From Vitrella brassicaformis CCMP3155 (Eukaryota > Protista > Chromerida): a stretch of DNA of 19,502 nucleotides. Positions 5,006 to 11,410 of this stretch are shown piece after piece (position 1 is the first letter of the stretch; the number at the start of each line of letters is the position of its first letter). A program made the position numbers and the translations under genes. The notes below the pieces were generated by a model. That model did not search any database, had not been told where the DNA came from, and saw only the letters and a list, made by a program, of their open reading frames with translations. The stretch spans positions 1 through 19,502 of the forward strand of contig CDMY01000794.1 of assembly GCA_001179505.1 (NCBI GenBank), written 5' to 3'.

Positions 5006-5097
5006 AAGTTTCATGGTATATGAGTGACACAGTCAGTCGGTTTCAAATGAAAATCACTTAGCTTAAGTTTCATGGTATATGAGTGACACAGTCAGTC
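5006..5097. repeat. Perfect 33-bp direct repeat (5006-5038, 5065-5097) with a 26-bp spacer
   Basis: aagtttcatggtatatgagtgacacagtcagtc occurs twice. The second copy shares its last base with the stop codon of the minus-strand gene. Confidence 0.95.
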
Positions 5098-7000
5098 TAA
5101 GCCGCTGTCCCTTCCCCTCCCGCGTCGTCCCCCTCCTCCTCCTCCTCCTCCTCCTCCTCCGACACCCATTCGAAGGGACACGTCTGCGCGACGGACACAC
5201 CGAACACCTCTCGAAGAGAGGCACGTGATGGCACGCTGATTACTTTGTCCAATCGCTGTCTTTTCACCTCCTGGCTCTGATCACCGCGCAGCCGGATGGC
5301 ACACACATCGACCTCCGCAGGCTTGCCGGCATCGCCTTTGTCCGCATCAGACCCATCCCCAATTGGCGCCAGTGATGCGAGCGCTTCAGACACACTGCGC
5401 TTGATGAGACCGACGGAGTCTTTGTCGAGGCCTGTCGGTCCCTCCTTGCACTGGAAGCCGTATATCGTCGTCAAGCGCCCTCTCTCGCACACAAAAACGG
5501 AGAAGTCGAAGCCGATGAAGCTCGAGTAACGCGGCTTGACGAAATAAGATACGGAGGGCTCTCCTGGGAGTGTCGGGTCCATCTTGTCGTGGAATTTGAT
5601 GATGAGATCATTCACCGATTCCGGCGGACTTAATTGGATGACACCCCCAAACTTGCATCCATCGTTGACTGCAGCGGGGATCACCTGGGCCGCCGCGCTG
5701 CTCAAGTCTGCTTTTGCGAGTCCGACGGCCACCAGGTGAGAATGGAGGAGCCTGAGAAGTATTCCTGCGCCGGCAACGCCCTCCCATCTCTTCCCGGACC
5801 CCCTGTCGAGTAGAAGCTGGTCGAGAAGCGTGGGAATTACCCTCAGACCAGAGGCAAATCCTTCTCCGAGCTCCGACTTGACCTCATTTTCAAACCCTGA
5901 CGCCCTACACGCCAGCCCAAGATAGCAGGGCGGCCACAAACATGACGAGTCAAAGACGTCGATGAAGCGCGACCACGTCCCCAGACCACCCGCCCGCTCG
6001 ACGTCGCCCTCGACGGCTGTTCGAACCACATCTTGCGCAAGGGCTGCGTTGAGAGGAGGGCGCTTGGCTTTGCGGAAGATCGTTTTGACCTCGTCGGGGG
6101 CAGGTCGCTCTTCCGAATACATGAGCGCCAGCAACGATGGTGCCCGGCCGGTCCAGCACACGAAACCGGCATGCACGTCTGGGCAGAGGCCGCTCTCGGT
6201 CACATCGGGCAGCTTCTGGACTCTCGGAATCTCTGGCCGGAAGACCCTGCGGCCGCCGAACTTGTAGTAGTACTTCTCCAGATTGTCCCCCAGTGTGAAG
6301 ACGTGGCTCGAGAACACGAAGCAACGGTGACGCTTGTTGAGGAAATTGTTGGTGACGAAGAAATCGAAGTCCTTTGCTGACCGCGCTTTCTCGAAGTCAG
6401 TGTCTTCGGGGATGCGCAGGTTGAGCTCATCGACGAAGAGCGCGAGAGGGTGGGTGCCAAGCCATTCCTCGATGCTCCTGGAGCTGACCGACACATTTTC
6501 GACCCAGTCAGCAAATGTCAGGTCGGCGGCTGCCTTGTCTGACGCCTTTGCCACTCTCTCGAGAGCCTCAGGCGTCGCAGTAGCCCAGGCTATTCGCAAG
6601 CCAATGGACTCCAGTGGTGTCTTGTTGTCGAGCTCAAAGACACTCGGCTTGGTAAACTCGTTGAACGTTATGAAGAGAGCGGGAATGCCATGTTGTTGGA
6701 GACTCAGAGCCAGCTCCTTGATCATTCGCGTTTTGCCTCCATACGAAAAGCGGCTGATAGCGGTCGGCGGCACACGCCTGTAGGGTCCCCCACGGTCCCC
6801 ATCTATCGTTTCACACTGGCGGAGAAGCTCTTTGCCGATTTCCTCCAGAGCAGGCTGGCCGACGTAGGGTACTTTCTGGTCGGGGCTGAGAATGACGCTG
6901 GGCACGCCAGTGGGGTCACGGTCAGTGGGGCTGGTGAGCTTGCCGACGCGGATCAGGTCGGCGGCCTTGATCTCCACATCACTCCTGCCGCGGACGGCAT
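5097..7000 (-). CDS. P-loop NTPase + C-terminal restriction-endonuclease-like domain (Crinkler/RHS-type NTPase-REase architecture); main exon of about 1.9 kb
   Basis: 626-aa ORF with Walker A-like SRFSYGGKT and Walker B LALFVDE. It also has GSGKRWE, a nuclease-like P-x4-F-x-G-F-D...YGFQCK motif and an acidic poly-Glu tail. A splice acceptor (ctgcctgcag) precedes position 7000. Confidence 0.8.
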
Positions 7001-7083: not shown

Positions 7084-7330
7084 CCCTCCCATCTAGACAA
7101 CGACGTGGACCTACAAAGGCCATCCAAAGGCAGCAGCCTTGTGGTTGTCTCGAGCCGCCCCAGGCGTCGCCAGTCAGCAGTGCTGTGGTCGCGGTGGCCC
7201 GGTGGCCCGCACCGATGTGGGTCGGGGTGTAGCGGTGCAGGAATGCCAATGATGCCGGCACTGCCCTCTCAGCCACGCAACACAAGAGCCATCCTTCCAG
7301 GATGACCAACAAGTACAACGAACCCGGCAT
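7084..7330 (-). CDS. Putative upstream exon of the NTPase-REase gene encoding a hydrophobic leader
   Basis: ATG at 7330 starts MPGSLYLLVILEGWLLCCVA.... The 247-nt exon ends in phase 1 at G|GTGGGG, and an 83-nt intron (7083-7001, containing a (GCCA)5 tract) joins in frame to exon 7000. Confidence 0.4.
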
Positions 7331-7932
7331 CCATCCTGCGCAAATAAATAGGAACGCAAACAGGCAGAAACATGCAAGATACATGAGGGTGACACACATC
7401 ACACATGGTGATGCAACCGAGGTCATGCTGGATGGTCGCACTCACCACGGATCTGCCTGCCACCCACACACCAACACACACAGGCAGATGACAGGCAGAT
7501 GGGTGCGTGGATGAGTGCTATCCCTGCCGCCTCCCTCTCTCCCTCCCTCCCCCCTCGCCTTAGGTACATGCATGGTAGGAACTACGGCTGACTCTACCTG
7601 GGAGCAAACAGCAACTCAATCAACCTGCAGACAAGCAGAGGGACAAGCAAGCAGTGCATGAATGGATCGCAAAACATGAATCATTCATTTGTGTGCAGAA
7701 GCGATCGAGAGCAACCCAACGGTCCACGACATGCGTGAGATCATGGCAGTGCCTCAACTCACCGATGTGGGACAGCGCATGACATTTGTGGAGGCGGTTC
7801 ACCGGGTGGCAACCCGACAGCGTCGACAATGGAATCGTTGATGATTTGTGTTGACAACGGCAGCAGAGGACGAGACCCTGGCAAGTGCATGTTAAAGGCA
7901 TTTCGTGAAACGGAACCGCTCAGGATACCACT

Positions 7933-7968
7933 TATCCCTCTATACTCCACTATCCCTCTATACTCCAC
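7933..7968. repeat. 18-bp tandem duplication (tatccctctatactccac x2)
   Basis: Two perfect adjacent copies at the putative element 5' end. Confidence 0.95.
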
Positions 7969-8145
7969 TACAATTCAAGCTCGCCATCACCCACCACCAC
8001 CCACAGACCACCGCCGTCTTTTCGTGTTAGACGCTGCGGGAAATTCCCACGCTGCCTGTGCTCGACAGCTGGGGTCCGGGGAGGCGCGGGTGCGGAGGTC
8101 GGAGCGAAAATGTGTTTCGCGCGCGGAGCGATCACCCCACCTGAG

Positions 8146-8218
8146 GACCACATAGCGCAGTGGTTGAGGCGTGCAGCGAGAGTGAAGGAAGTCGCGGGCT
8201 CGAATCGCAGAGGGGTCC
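8146..8218 (+). pseudogene. Degenerate tRNA-like cassette 1 (Pol III A/B boxes)
   Basis: A-box TAGCGCAGTGG at 8153 and B-box-like GGCTCGAATC at 8197 have canonical spacing (T8 to G53 = 45 nt). The D-stem GCGC/GCGT pairs. Anticodon and T stems are broken. Confidence 0.6.
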
Positions 8219-8369
8219 CGTATTCAGCCCGTACAGGGCGACTCTAAACCCCCGTCTTTTCGTGTTAGACGCTGCGGGAAATTCCCTCGCAGCTGGGGTC
8301 CGGGGAGGCGCGGGTGCGGAGATCGGAGCGGAAATGTGTTTCACCCGGGAGCGGTTCACCCCGCCCGAT

Positions 8370-8444
8370 GAGCACATAGCGCAATGGTGAGGCTGCGTGC
8401 AGCGGGGGTACAGGGACTCGCGGGTTCGACTCGCAGAGCGGTCC
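8370..8444 (+). pseudogene. Degenerate tRNA-like cassette 2 (Pol III A/B boxes)
   Basis: A-box TAGCGCAATGG at 8377 and B-box GGTTCGACTC at 8423, with T8 to G53 = 47 nt. No complete cloverleaf. Confidence 0.6.
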
Positions 8445-8865
8445 TGTGTTGAGCTCGCACAGTGCGCGGGTGCTCCCTGGAACCGCTGCTGCGCGGGTCA
8501 GCTCCCTGATACAGCTTTCCAGAACGCCCGCGCGTGCGCGGGCCAAACTCTAGTCTACGTTTGCGATCGTCAGGAGCGGTCCACGAAAGGACCACGCCAC
8601 CACCGCTGGTGCACTCATGCACTTTTGTCTTTTGGTAGATTTTGTGATGCAAAGCGACATCACATCCATACCCACATTGATCATACATGCATGTATGTAT
8701 GACGGGGTGGAGTCAAATTGCATCGAGCACTGCTTCTCAGGCGCACAGAGAAGAACCAAGGGCTTCATGTCATCGAGGTTCATTCAACAAGGGCTTCATG
8801 TCAAAAGCGCAACGATCCCGTGGTTCCTTTCTTCAGGCAACAAGGGAAAGGCTAAGGTGTGACAC

Positions 8866-11410
8866 TCAGAAGAAGTCCATGTCGTCGCCACCCTCCTCCT
8901 CGCCGGCCTGGCAGAAATGGCACATGATTTTCCGCACACCACACGCGTTCCCATCGATTTGCACCTGTGCCAGGATCTCCTTCTCTCTCTGCCGTCGTAT
9001 CTCGGCTTCTTCGGCATCGTCCGTCTTCTGAGAAACACACATGCACACATCCGTGCCACAAGGATGATGTCACTATGCTCACAAACTACTTCACAGCCCA
9101 CCTCGTCCGGGTACTGCATTGCCTGCAATGACCACACACACCATTGCAATGCTTGAGCCCACGTCATTCTGACTGCACACCTTGACAGCATCGTTGTGAA
9201 GCTGGAGACAGAAGTATACGCGCTTGTGGAAGGCTTTCAGTGGCTCATCGGAAGCATAGACGTCAGTATTGGCCTACACAGACGAGAGCAAAACGTGCCA
9301 CTGCTATTACCTGCCCAGTATGTGAACTAATCACCTTGCTCTGCACATATTGCTTGTCGTGGTCAATTGACGCTTCGATGACTCCGTCCAGAATCGCCTG
9401 AAAGGACAGGTCAACATGAAAATCGACACACTTGCCTCTTTGCAGGGAGTACCTTGCCAACGATTCCTTCCGCATCAGCAGCCGAATCAAGTCCCAGCTT
9501 CATTGCCACATCAGCCTACAAACAGATGCGAGCCACGACCTTTCATTATCGACTCTCAATATGTGTCATCTCGTCTGTGCCCTCCTCTCCGTATTCGCCT
9601 CACAAGTGAGATTCGGCTGTAGGACAGGTTGATGAGCCGCAGGCCCGCTTTGATGACGTTGGACTGCAGCCGGCGGATGAGAAAGAGCGTCCCGTCCCTC
9701 TTGAACAGGTCCTCGTTGGAATCCATGACATTCTTGAACGAATGCAAGTCACCTGTGCGAACAGCCTGGGGGCAAGGCAACCAAGGAGAGGCGAAGGGTG
9801 CAGGCGAGCGCCATCTTGTCTGCCTCGTCGTAGGGTCACCTGAACGATGGCCTCGTAGGCAGAGAGGGACTTCTTGAGTTCCTCCTGATTGAACGTGGAT
9901 CGGTCAGGGATGTCACCCATCAGCAACTCGACAACAATCGCCATCTTGGTGGCCTGACACCACGCACAACCACATCAACAATGGAAGTCGCATCCAGTGT
10001 CAAGTGACAGTGTCACACGGTGTCTGACCGCCAAGCGAAATCCCCGCGCAGTCTTGGGGCCTTGGGGAGCTTTGCGGATTGCCTGATGGGACACACGAAC
10101 AATATATGAATGGGTAAGTGGGCTTCCAATGGCACCAACTGCAGGCTTACGGTGGTGAGCTTGCCGTGGGCGTCAGAGTACTCCAGCTGGACAGCTTTGA
10201 TGCGGCCTGAAAGTAGGGAACGACTCGTGCGTGCGCGTGTGGTGATGATGTGATGCCTTTGTGTTGTGGCTGCTGACCGATATAGAAGAGGTACCGTGCG
10301 TACTGCGCACTGGATCGCAGATTCTCAGGAAATGTTGTCTTGGACACGAGCTTGAGCGCCATCTCGTACAAGTTGTATGCCAGGTAATTTCTCAGCAGTA
10401 GGTTCAACTGAGTGGCCTGAGGACACACACAAAGGCCGGGGAGGCTGAAGAGGTGACCACTGTGCAAGGATGACGTCACCTGTCCCACAAGGTCATGATG
10501 TAGCGACGCTGTGCGGTACGCTGCCATCAAATCCCTGCCACATAGGACGGACGCACACGCACACGGACACCCGGTACATGGCACCTTTTGATGTTGGTTC
10601 CTACTCTCGTATCTCTGACAGGCGCCCATCCAGCTCGTACGCACGAGACAAACAAAAGTATGCCTGCAGAGCCGCCCCATGACAGGTGAGAAGATATGCA
10701 TTTGAATGGCATGTTCATGTGCCCACCCGTGCGGTCAGAGGGTCCAGAGACCGTCGGTTGTACGACTTGGCACGACTCACAACCAAATCGGCTCCTGACA
10801 CGGCCTGGAAAAAGCACACAGCCACACAGTCACACAACCGCATCATAGCAACGCGCGTGCCTGACCTTTTGAGTCAGCTTCTTGTCGACGAAATGCGTGA
10901 CGACGAGTATGCCGAGATAGATCTCACATTCAGGCATGATAATGTCGAAGTGGTGTTCGTGGAAGGGGAATGGCGAAGGACTGTGTGACGACGGGGCAGC
11001 CACACCGTTCGGCAGAGGGGGTGGGGCCATCTCGACATCCTCAGACTGATATGCATAGCAGAAACGCAGAAATAGAGCAAAGCATTCACAGGTAATCCGC
11101 CACCCACATTGCCACCACATACCTGCTGTTGCCCCTCCAGCATCCCCACGAGCCGCTCCTTGTATGGCGTGTTCTTGAGCACCAGTTTGACCATCTTGAG
11201 CAAGTCGGCGACGCCCATTCGCCGGCGCTGCCACGAGATGTTGCGAAGGGCACGATTGACGAGGCGCACCTCCTTCGTAACGATGCCATTGTGAATCAGC
11301 TCAAGGCTTATCCCCAGGTCGCCGGCAAAGGTGCGTGGAGGCTTGATCTTCTTGTCTTCCGCCACCTTGGGCTCGGGCTCCTTCTCTGCATCCTTCCCTT
11401 CTCCCTTCAT
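8866..11410 (-). CDS. RPN3: 26S proteasome regulatory (lid) subunit RPN3/PSMD3, 16 exons, about 509 aa
   Basis: Exons 11410-11123, 11045-10866, 10804-10727, 10663-10605, 10534-10480, 10416-10278, 10206-10151, 10082-10029, 9953-9840, 9765-9604, 9515-9453, 9397-9335, 9273-9181, 9122-9102, 9027-8965 and 8907-8866. All introns are GT-AG and the exons total 1530 nt in frame. Hallmark motifs: [95 protein letters not shown]. Confidence 0.96.

Follow-up and report, generated by a model that had tools for sequence, protein, structure and literature searches.

A probable low-copy family of non-autonomous Helitrons with a tRNA-like internal module in the chromerid Vitrella brassicaformis

Introduction

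Canonical (Helitron1-type) Helitrons are defined, in the summary given by PMC13085455, by a 5′-TC and a 3′-CTRR terminus, a short hairpin near the 3′ end and insertion into 5′-AT-3′ without a target-site duplication (TSD). The telomere-capping Helitrons of Paramecium form a separate class, which has other ends and always inserts into C4A2 repeats (PMC13085455). The subterminal palindrome used as a criterion for canonical Helitrons in this study is GC-rich, 16–20 nt long and located approx. 10–12 nt before the 3′ end. Helentrons use a TT target and carry hairpins at both ends. In the Pacific oyster, Helentron-derived elements disperse satellite-like arrays (PMC7492417). Full-text searches of the open-access literature gave no paper that, judged by title and abstract, treats Helitrons in Vitrella or Chromera, and none on a Helitron with a tRNA-derived module.

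Here, we analyze a putative element of Vitrella brassicaformis CCMP3155, in which the TC, CTRR and hairpin of canonical Helitrons are present and the flanking bases, together with the lack of a TSD, are compatible with an insertion between A and T. Its palindrome lies within the limits given above. Like canonical Helitrons, the family to which it belongs combines a lack of coding capacity with varying interiors, and one member harbors an orphan open reading frame (ORF). It differs from the non-autonomous canonical Helitrons of plants and animals in its very low copy number of about a dozen. Moreover, its 5′ end occurs on no coding element of the assembly, and its interior consists of a tandem tRNA-like module.

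Results

Ends of the element

The window, i.e. the whole analyzed stretch of 19,502 nt, is contig C794 of the V. brassicaformis assembly. The initial annotation had described positions 7935–8553 as a non-autonomous Helitron-like element starting with TC after a host A, ending with CTAG before a host T, carrying an 18-bp GC-rich palindrome that stops 10 nt before the terminus and lacking a TSD. Each of these features was found again at the following positions.

7935–8553, plus strand: whole element, most probably a non-autonomous Helitron copy, 619 nt; homology to other copies is confined between these ends and the flanks are unrelated
7934, plus strand: base −1 (A), presumed host A of the A-T target; A in 8 of 8 copies with a 5′ end
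7933–7968 (7933–7950 and 7951–7968), plus strand: 18-nt tandem duplication of the 5′ terminus, peculiar to the window copy
8526–8543, plus strand: 3′ subterminal GC palindrome (hairpin in the DNA fold), 10 nt short of the terminus
8550–8553, plus strand: 3′ terminus CTAG, matching CTRR; seven of the eight family 3′ ends read CTAG and the remaining one CTAT
8554, plus strand: base +1 (T), presumed host T; six of eight family copies have T here, as do the C366, C541, C204 and C571 termini

Inspection of the sequence placed the 5′ TC at 7935–7936, directly after A7934, and TC starts all eight family copies that have retained their 5′ end. The A/TC recurs at 7952/7953 owing to the 18-nt duplication, and alignments with the family begin at this inner A/TC. 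Tandem Repeats Finder (TRF) reported a period of 18 with 2.3 copies at the 5′ terminus, and the two members of the duplication are 100% identical. According to the alignment, the other family copies possess a single 5′ terminus; if the duplication is discounted, the length of the window element is 601 nt. As a CCACT(T)A microhomology is common to the flank and the element at the 5′ end, the duplication is compatible with an origin by replication slippage.

At the 3′ end, folding of the 18-nt palindrome as DNA gave a 7-bp stem with a 4-nt loop and −9.5 kcal/mol. Hairpins in five termini showed stems of 7–8 bp and −8.8 to −12.2 kcal/mol in the DNA fold. The loop is variable and the stem constant across the family 3′ ends and the termini of two Rep/helicase (RepHel) Helitrons described below (C366 and C541). 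Because the stem is invariant, it offers no compensatory change that would prove structural selection on the hairpin.

Comparison of the window flanks revealed no direct repeat or TSD, and a repeat search found no terminal inverted repeat (TIR) joining the ends of the window element. A MITE or another TIR transposon was rejected on these two grounds.

Related copies in the genome

When the whole genome (72.7 Mb, 1064 contigs) was searched by BLAST and with sequence patterns, a family of about a dozen members emerged, namely seven complete copies on seven contigs, ranging from 360 to 1399 nt, and about five fragments.

C794 (window): complete copy, 619 nt
C409 (L002): complete copy, 360 nt
C1057 (L003): complete copy, 561 nt
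C529 (L004): complete copy, 579 nt
C831 (L006): complete copy, 544 nt
C227 (L005), minus strand: complete copy, 785 nt
C298 (L021), minus strand, locus positions 1519 down to 121: complete copy, 1399 nt
C541 (L009): 5′ fragment
C602 (L007), start of the contig: 3′ fragment
C334 and C301: short internal fragments

The seven complete copies share both ends. A TCTCTCTATAC-like start directly follows A in eight of eight copies with a 5′ end, and the family 3′ end comprises the hairpin, 9–11 nt, CTAG (7/8) and T (6/8); these counts rest on about a dozen copies and are thin statistics, set against background frequencies of 0.21 for both A and T in the sampled DNA. None of the seven complete copies displayed a TSD or a poly-A tail. 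Their flanks are unrelated, and similarity stops within about 3 nt at both ends at all seven loci. Common 3′ flanks between copies were not significant, save simple or telomere-like repeats. The copies of this dispersed family are thus neither single nor bounded by unrelated ends, and the Helitron-like character proposed in the initial annotation is borne out by them as well as by the Rep/helicase Helitrons with a homologous 3′ terminus in the same genome (see below).

The bases next to the presumed junctions are also biased. G is present at −2 in five of eight copies and A at −3 in five of eight, and C/T at +2/+3 are enriched, too. CTAG is followed by TCT in 5 of 10 termini and by TC in 6 of 10 (window 8554–8556, L003, L004, L007, L021, L035 and others). 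Given these enrichments, the end placement derived from seven copies is precise to about 3 nt only. The TCT could reflect a wider target preference (A/TCT), 1–3 nt of the true terminus or the trace of a head-to-tail junction. As a side observation, the 5′ start of the element reads TCTCTC, comparable to the TCT behind CTAG at the 3′ junctions. A local alignment of the 48 nt after CTAG with the element did not score above shuffles (z = 0.5), so that a further element fragment was not detected there.

The same base preferences, together with a CTCTA motif near both ends, would suit a mobile element that belongs to a different or unknown class, has its true ends 1–3 nt outside TC and CTAG (e.g. 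AGA...TCT) and resembles a Helitron partly by coincidence. No TIR or TSD fits such alternative ends, however, and the hairpin-CTAG/T terminus shared with elements encoding Rep and helicase is the most straightforward connection to an enzyme known from this genome. We regard an element of another class as improbable.

Overall identity between the copies amounts to approx. 70–90% (72–88% by BLAST), and the internal units are 68–93% identical; at this divergence, the family must be considered old. In a tree of the units, unit 1 of C529, C831 and C1057 forms one clade (support 100/100), and unit 2 of the same copies forms another (86/72). Moreover, box A of unit 2 is missing from both C529 and C831 owing to a shared derived deletion, yet the two copies have different flanks. 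The separate clades of the units and the shared deletion in different flanks indicate that a dimer, and later a deleted dimer, was copied to new sites together with its ends. For C1057, C529 and C831, the dimer is thus older than the dispersal, and the element moved as a dimer.

The copy on C298 is a far-diverged relative with a single diverged tRNA-like unit and the hairpin-CTAG/T end. Eighteen of its first 19 nt are kept, and its 3′ terminal stretch is clearly related to that of the family (by eye, approx. three quarters of the final 35 nt), whereas its unit is just 53–60% identical. Conservation of the ends above the interior gives them the look of cis-acting transposon termini. The C298 relative encloses an intact ORF of 311 aa (ATG at approx. 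1220, stop at 285), for which neither a Pfam match nor a second copy in the genome was found. This ORF may represent a gene captured by the Helitron or an orphan gene within it.

The low copy number would agree with a reading that involves no transposon at all, in which a small family of non-coding genes, of Pol III type (a tRNA-like gene plus a conserved upstream region) or otherwise, was dispersed by segmental duplication or gene conversion. Such a spread is difficult to reconcile with similarity that breaks off sharply (to about 3 nt) at one and the same pair of ends at seven loci with unrelated flanks, and with a diverged C298 copy that keeps its ends better than its interior.

Several further observations concern the surroundings of individual copies. 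GCGCGGGCGAACGCTAGTCT, the 20-nt 3′ end found in the C298/C227 subtype, has further exact copies at C204:66581–66600 (minus strand) and C571:275089–275108 (plus strand). Both were missed by the 619-nt query and by the 5′ 20-mer, and are probably parts of additional elements within the same Helitron lineage. Degenerate telomere-like repeats of the GGGTTTAGGG type occur just upstream of the 5′ ends of C409 (L002 1440–1500) and C1057 (L003 1425–1474), in one case in both orientations. A GAACAC(AC)GAG motif is common to these two copies, likewise just upstream of the 5′ ends. A AAACCCTTGACCCGAACCCT stretch inside the C298 relative is similar to the telomere-like repeats near C409 and C1057, and TRF reported a telomere-like CCCTAAAC repeat (2.2 copies) at 2529–2546 of the window.

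Rep/helicase Helitrons in the same genome

Profile searches displayed matches to Helitron_like_N (PF14214) and PIF1 (PF05970) at at least eight loci. One of them is a Helitron of about 6.5 kb on C366 (C366:88809–95292, plus strand; L045 6810 to L051 3293), which has a probable A/TC start and contains an open frame of 804 codons with Rep, followed by PIF1 pieces in two frames. Approx. 1.5 kb downstream of the helicase, the coding strand carries the hairpin CCCGCGC-GAA-GCGCGGG and 10 nt ending in CTAG, followed by T. On C541, an identical hairpin with the tail ...CTCTAG before T is located approx. 0.6 kb downstream of a PIF1/Pif1_2B helicase, again on the coding strand. The C541 helicase is 53–64% identical to that of C366 and 27–43% identical to those of other lineages. 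In the 72.7-Mb genome this hairpin occurs five times (C366, C541, C944, C40 and C534), versus zero occurrences of a reversed-pattern control. The elements on C40 (approx. 48780–50531, minus strand) and C534 (approx. 45228–46870) are deletion derivatives of the C366 element of about 1.7 kb with the same 5′ region and 3′ end. The hairpin-CTAG motif was absent from the five other RepHel regions examined.

The termini of the window family and those of C366 and C541 agree in the stem (CCCGCGC/GCGCGGG), in its distance to the end and in the CTAG/T junction; as for the tail, the window family comes closest to the C541 terminus (...CTCTAG). The comparison establishes, at the level of sequence, that the 3′ end signal of the family is homologous to the terminus with which Rep/PIF1-helicase Helitrons in this genome end. 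A 3′ end of this descent is a further argument against a family of non-coding genes.

The initial annotation had proposed a search for an autonomous element with matching termini; homologous hairpin-CTAG/T 3′ ends are present on C366 and C541, whereas the family 5′ end was found on no coding element. A search of the whole genome with the family 5′ 20-mer (up to 3 mismatches) detected non-autonomous copies only and no coding element, and neither blastn nor local alignment of the element ends against six RepHel regions gave anything for the 5′ end. The apparent start of the C366 element, at which the similarity to C40 and C534 begins, is A followed by TCCGAACGCG and is unlike the family 5′ end. 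As no coding element carries the family 5′ end and the C366 start differs, the helper of the family may be extinct, unassembled or situated in the upstream part of C541. C366/C541 represent a candidate helper lineage.

Internal tandem units and tRNA-like motifs

The interior of the window element consists of two tandem units, each with one box A/box B pair, as had been noticed initially.

8010–8252, plus strand: internal tandem unit 1 (repeat search and alignment)
8248–8466, plus strand: internal tandem unit 2, 14 nt missing; identity with unit 1 is 84% in the aligned columns
8146–8218, plus strand: tRNA-like relic 1; box A 8153–8163, exact to TRGCNNAGTGG; box B 8197–8207, two mismatches; spacing 44
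8370–8446, plus strand: tRNA-like relic 2; box A 8377–8387, one mismatch; box B 8423–8433, one mismatch; spacing 46

Block by block, the two units are 80–93% identical, and the unit size is approx. 225–240 nt. The sole ORF reaching into the element (8356–8688, minus strand, 110 aa) had no match in Pfam. A search of both strands of the 19.5-kb window found box A/box B pairs at these two sites only, and block shuffles of the window gave a mean of 0.21 pairs at the same loose thresholds. Pairs at tRNA-like spacing exist in the other family copies, too. A distance of 44–46 nt between the boxes corresponds to tRNA positions 8 and 52.

Beyond the level of motifs, the likeness to tRNA is limited. When relic 1 was folded by hand, five of seven positions of the acceptor stem were paired and the anticodon arm was unpaired. 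A cmscan with the Rfam tRNA model RF00005 gave no match at E ≤ 10 on 2.5 kb, six loci and three pieces of about 100 nt; the only piece touching tRNA-like models in Rfam was a T-arm-like hairpin in the C1057 copy. ARAGORN detected no tRNA in the tRNA-like segments in default or -ps mode. The odd 'tRNA-???' shapes obtained with -ps80 were distrusted. A genome BLAST of the tRNA-like segment returned family members only and none of the 63 located tRNA genes. With a broken cloverleaf and neither a tRNA model match nor an ARAGORN call, a tRNA gene or pseudogene was rejected. The term 'tRNA-derived' used initially for the units is therefore justified with respect to the box motifs, their spacing and the T-arm-like hairpin, but not by any match to a tRNA in Rfam, ARAGORN or BLAST searches. 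The interior module can be described as a tRNA-like relic at the motif level, for which descent from a tRNA gene would be plausible but is unproven, and there is no sign that it works.

Outside the element, a weak scaRNA match at 8729–8836 (E = 0.06, far below the gathering score) was taken as chance.

Conservation within the units did not single out the boxes, since 15% and 61% of 11-nt windows were conserved equally well or better, and the approx. 120 nt upstream of each tRNA-like segment are conserved as well as the boxes. The latter would be in line with the non-coding gene family considered above. Rfam, however, returned no match for the tandem unit, and the broken cloverleaf also speaks against such genes; taken together with the shared ends, a dispersed gene family that involves no transposon is very unlikely.

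Box A/box B pairs at tRNA-like spacing in both units and in other copies, as well as a TTTT run at 8256–8259, about 40 nt past the first tRNA-like segment, could be taken as signs of a tRNA-derived SINE or a Helitron/SINE hybrid, in which Pol III would transcribe from the boxes and a LINE enzyme would copy the RNA back. The architecture of the element contradicts this. Counted from the 5′ end, the first box A lies 219 nt inside, so the common 5′ end is far upstream of the box, and the element ends in a hairpin and CTAG with neither a poly-A or simple-repeat tail nor a TSD. Moreover, two copies lost a box A by deletion and yet moved, the boxes do not exceed the remainder of the unit in conservation, and no tRNA model matches. 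The element ends largely refute the SINE reading, which we consider hardly credible. Accordingly, the suggestion in the initial annotation that a Helitron/SINE hybrid could carry Pol III promoters to new sites is not upheld by boxes approx. 220 nt inside about a dozen old copies that lack a retroposon tail. The Helitron feature is real and was correctly observed; the tRNA/SINE part of that reading is over-interpreted. Rather than a working Pol III gene, the tRNA-like boxes most likely represent the passive remains of a tRNA-like piece, either captured or ancestral.

Element-free paralog and gene context

The flanks of the window element have a paralog with 88–91% identity and several indels on the minus strand of C927 (C927:6290–8071). 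The corresponding blocks are as follows.

Window 7200–7641: C927 8071–7656
Window 7730–7844: C927 7212–7100
Window 7893–7922: C927 7079–7050
Window 8602–9297: C927 7028–6290

On C927, 21 nt replace window positions 7923–8601, which amount to 679 nt (619 nt of element, preceded by 12 nt and followed by 48 nt of flank). The junction is ragged, and these 12 nt and 48 nt of immediate flank are unrecognizable on C927. The search for an empty site thus yielded a paralog without the element but no precise A-T junction: neither an anchored gap pattern nor two 21-mers of the immediate flanks (up to 3 mismatches) matched a precise empty site on C927. The comparison supports a presence/absence difference for the element among duplicated segments. 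A possible alternative to an insertion in the window is a deletion on C927. At another position of the paralog, C927 has approx. 443 nt where the window has 88 nt (7642–7729).

The element sits between two minus-strand genes. It is located downstream of a gene for a PSMD3/RPN3-like proteasome regulatory subunit (exons within 9603–10701, minus strand; PF25573, E = 5e-16 and 9e-9) and upstream of an orphan ORF of 626 codons (5097–6977, minus strand).

Discussion

The shared ends, unrelated flanks and homologous RepHel termini make it likely that positions 7935–8553 represent an old and inactive member of a non-autonomous Helitron family that is of the canonical type and low in copy number. In this, the element behaves like many non-autonomous Helitrons of plants and animals. 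Judged from what is known about Helitrons, a RepHel protein supplied in trans would have nicked the element at the 5′ TC, unwound one strand in 5′ to 3′ direction and halted at the hairpin-CTAG signal. The strand would then have been pasted between a host A and T with no target duplication. This scheme of nick, unwinding, hairpin stop and A-T paste reportedly stems from work on Helraiser. The interior is a module of approx. 230 nt, present in one or two tandem copies and containing a decayed tRNA-like segment. Its tandem state arose from local duplication, and the window copy would additionally have duplicated its own first 18 nt by slippage. The tRNA-like segment was already part of the family ancestor, as the far-diverged 1.4-kb C298 relative has it.

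The tRNA-like modules might instead still bind TFIIIC or Pol III, in which case a Helitron family would have seeded Pol III-type boundary or promoter sites in a handful of intergenic or promoter regions of the compact chromerid genome. If true, this would explain the retention of the module from the family ancestor (C298 relative) to the youngest copies. The analysis gave no positive sign of such a role, the boxes being conserved like their surroundings and the two copies with a lost box A having spread all the same, and we consider it doubtful at best.

Comparison with described systems sets the Vitrella family apart in several respects. The oyster Helentron derivatives (PMC7492417) resemble it in having short tandem arrays of varying unit number between transposon ends. 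The Vitrella elements, in contrast, contain only one or two units of approx. 230 nt between canonical ends and show no satellite expansion of the kind described there. With tRNA-derived SINEs the family shares boxes A and B at tRNA-like spacing and the T-run after the segment of unit 1, but its boxes are internal and do not form a 5′ head, and it has the ends of a DNA transposon in place of a LINE-type tail, poly-A and TSD. The telomere-capping Helitrons of Paramecium (PMC13085455) likewise reside in an alveolate host, and telomere-like debris is found upstream of the C409 and C1057 copies; the window copy and most other Vitrella copies, however, have no telomeric flank.

The known workings of Helitrons and SINEs are unchanged by this family, and a Helitron that spreads Pol III promoters is an attractive idea with no support so far. 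What our results add to a chromerid genome is a documented family of non-autonomous Helitrons, together with a candidate helper lineage (C366/C541) and an element-free paralog, which can be used in the repeat annotation of Vitrella. The family also provides a clean small case of termini that are better conserved than the interior, and of internal tandem duplication in Helitrons.
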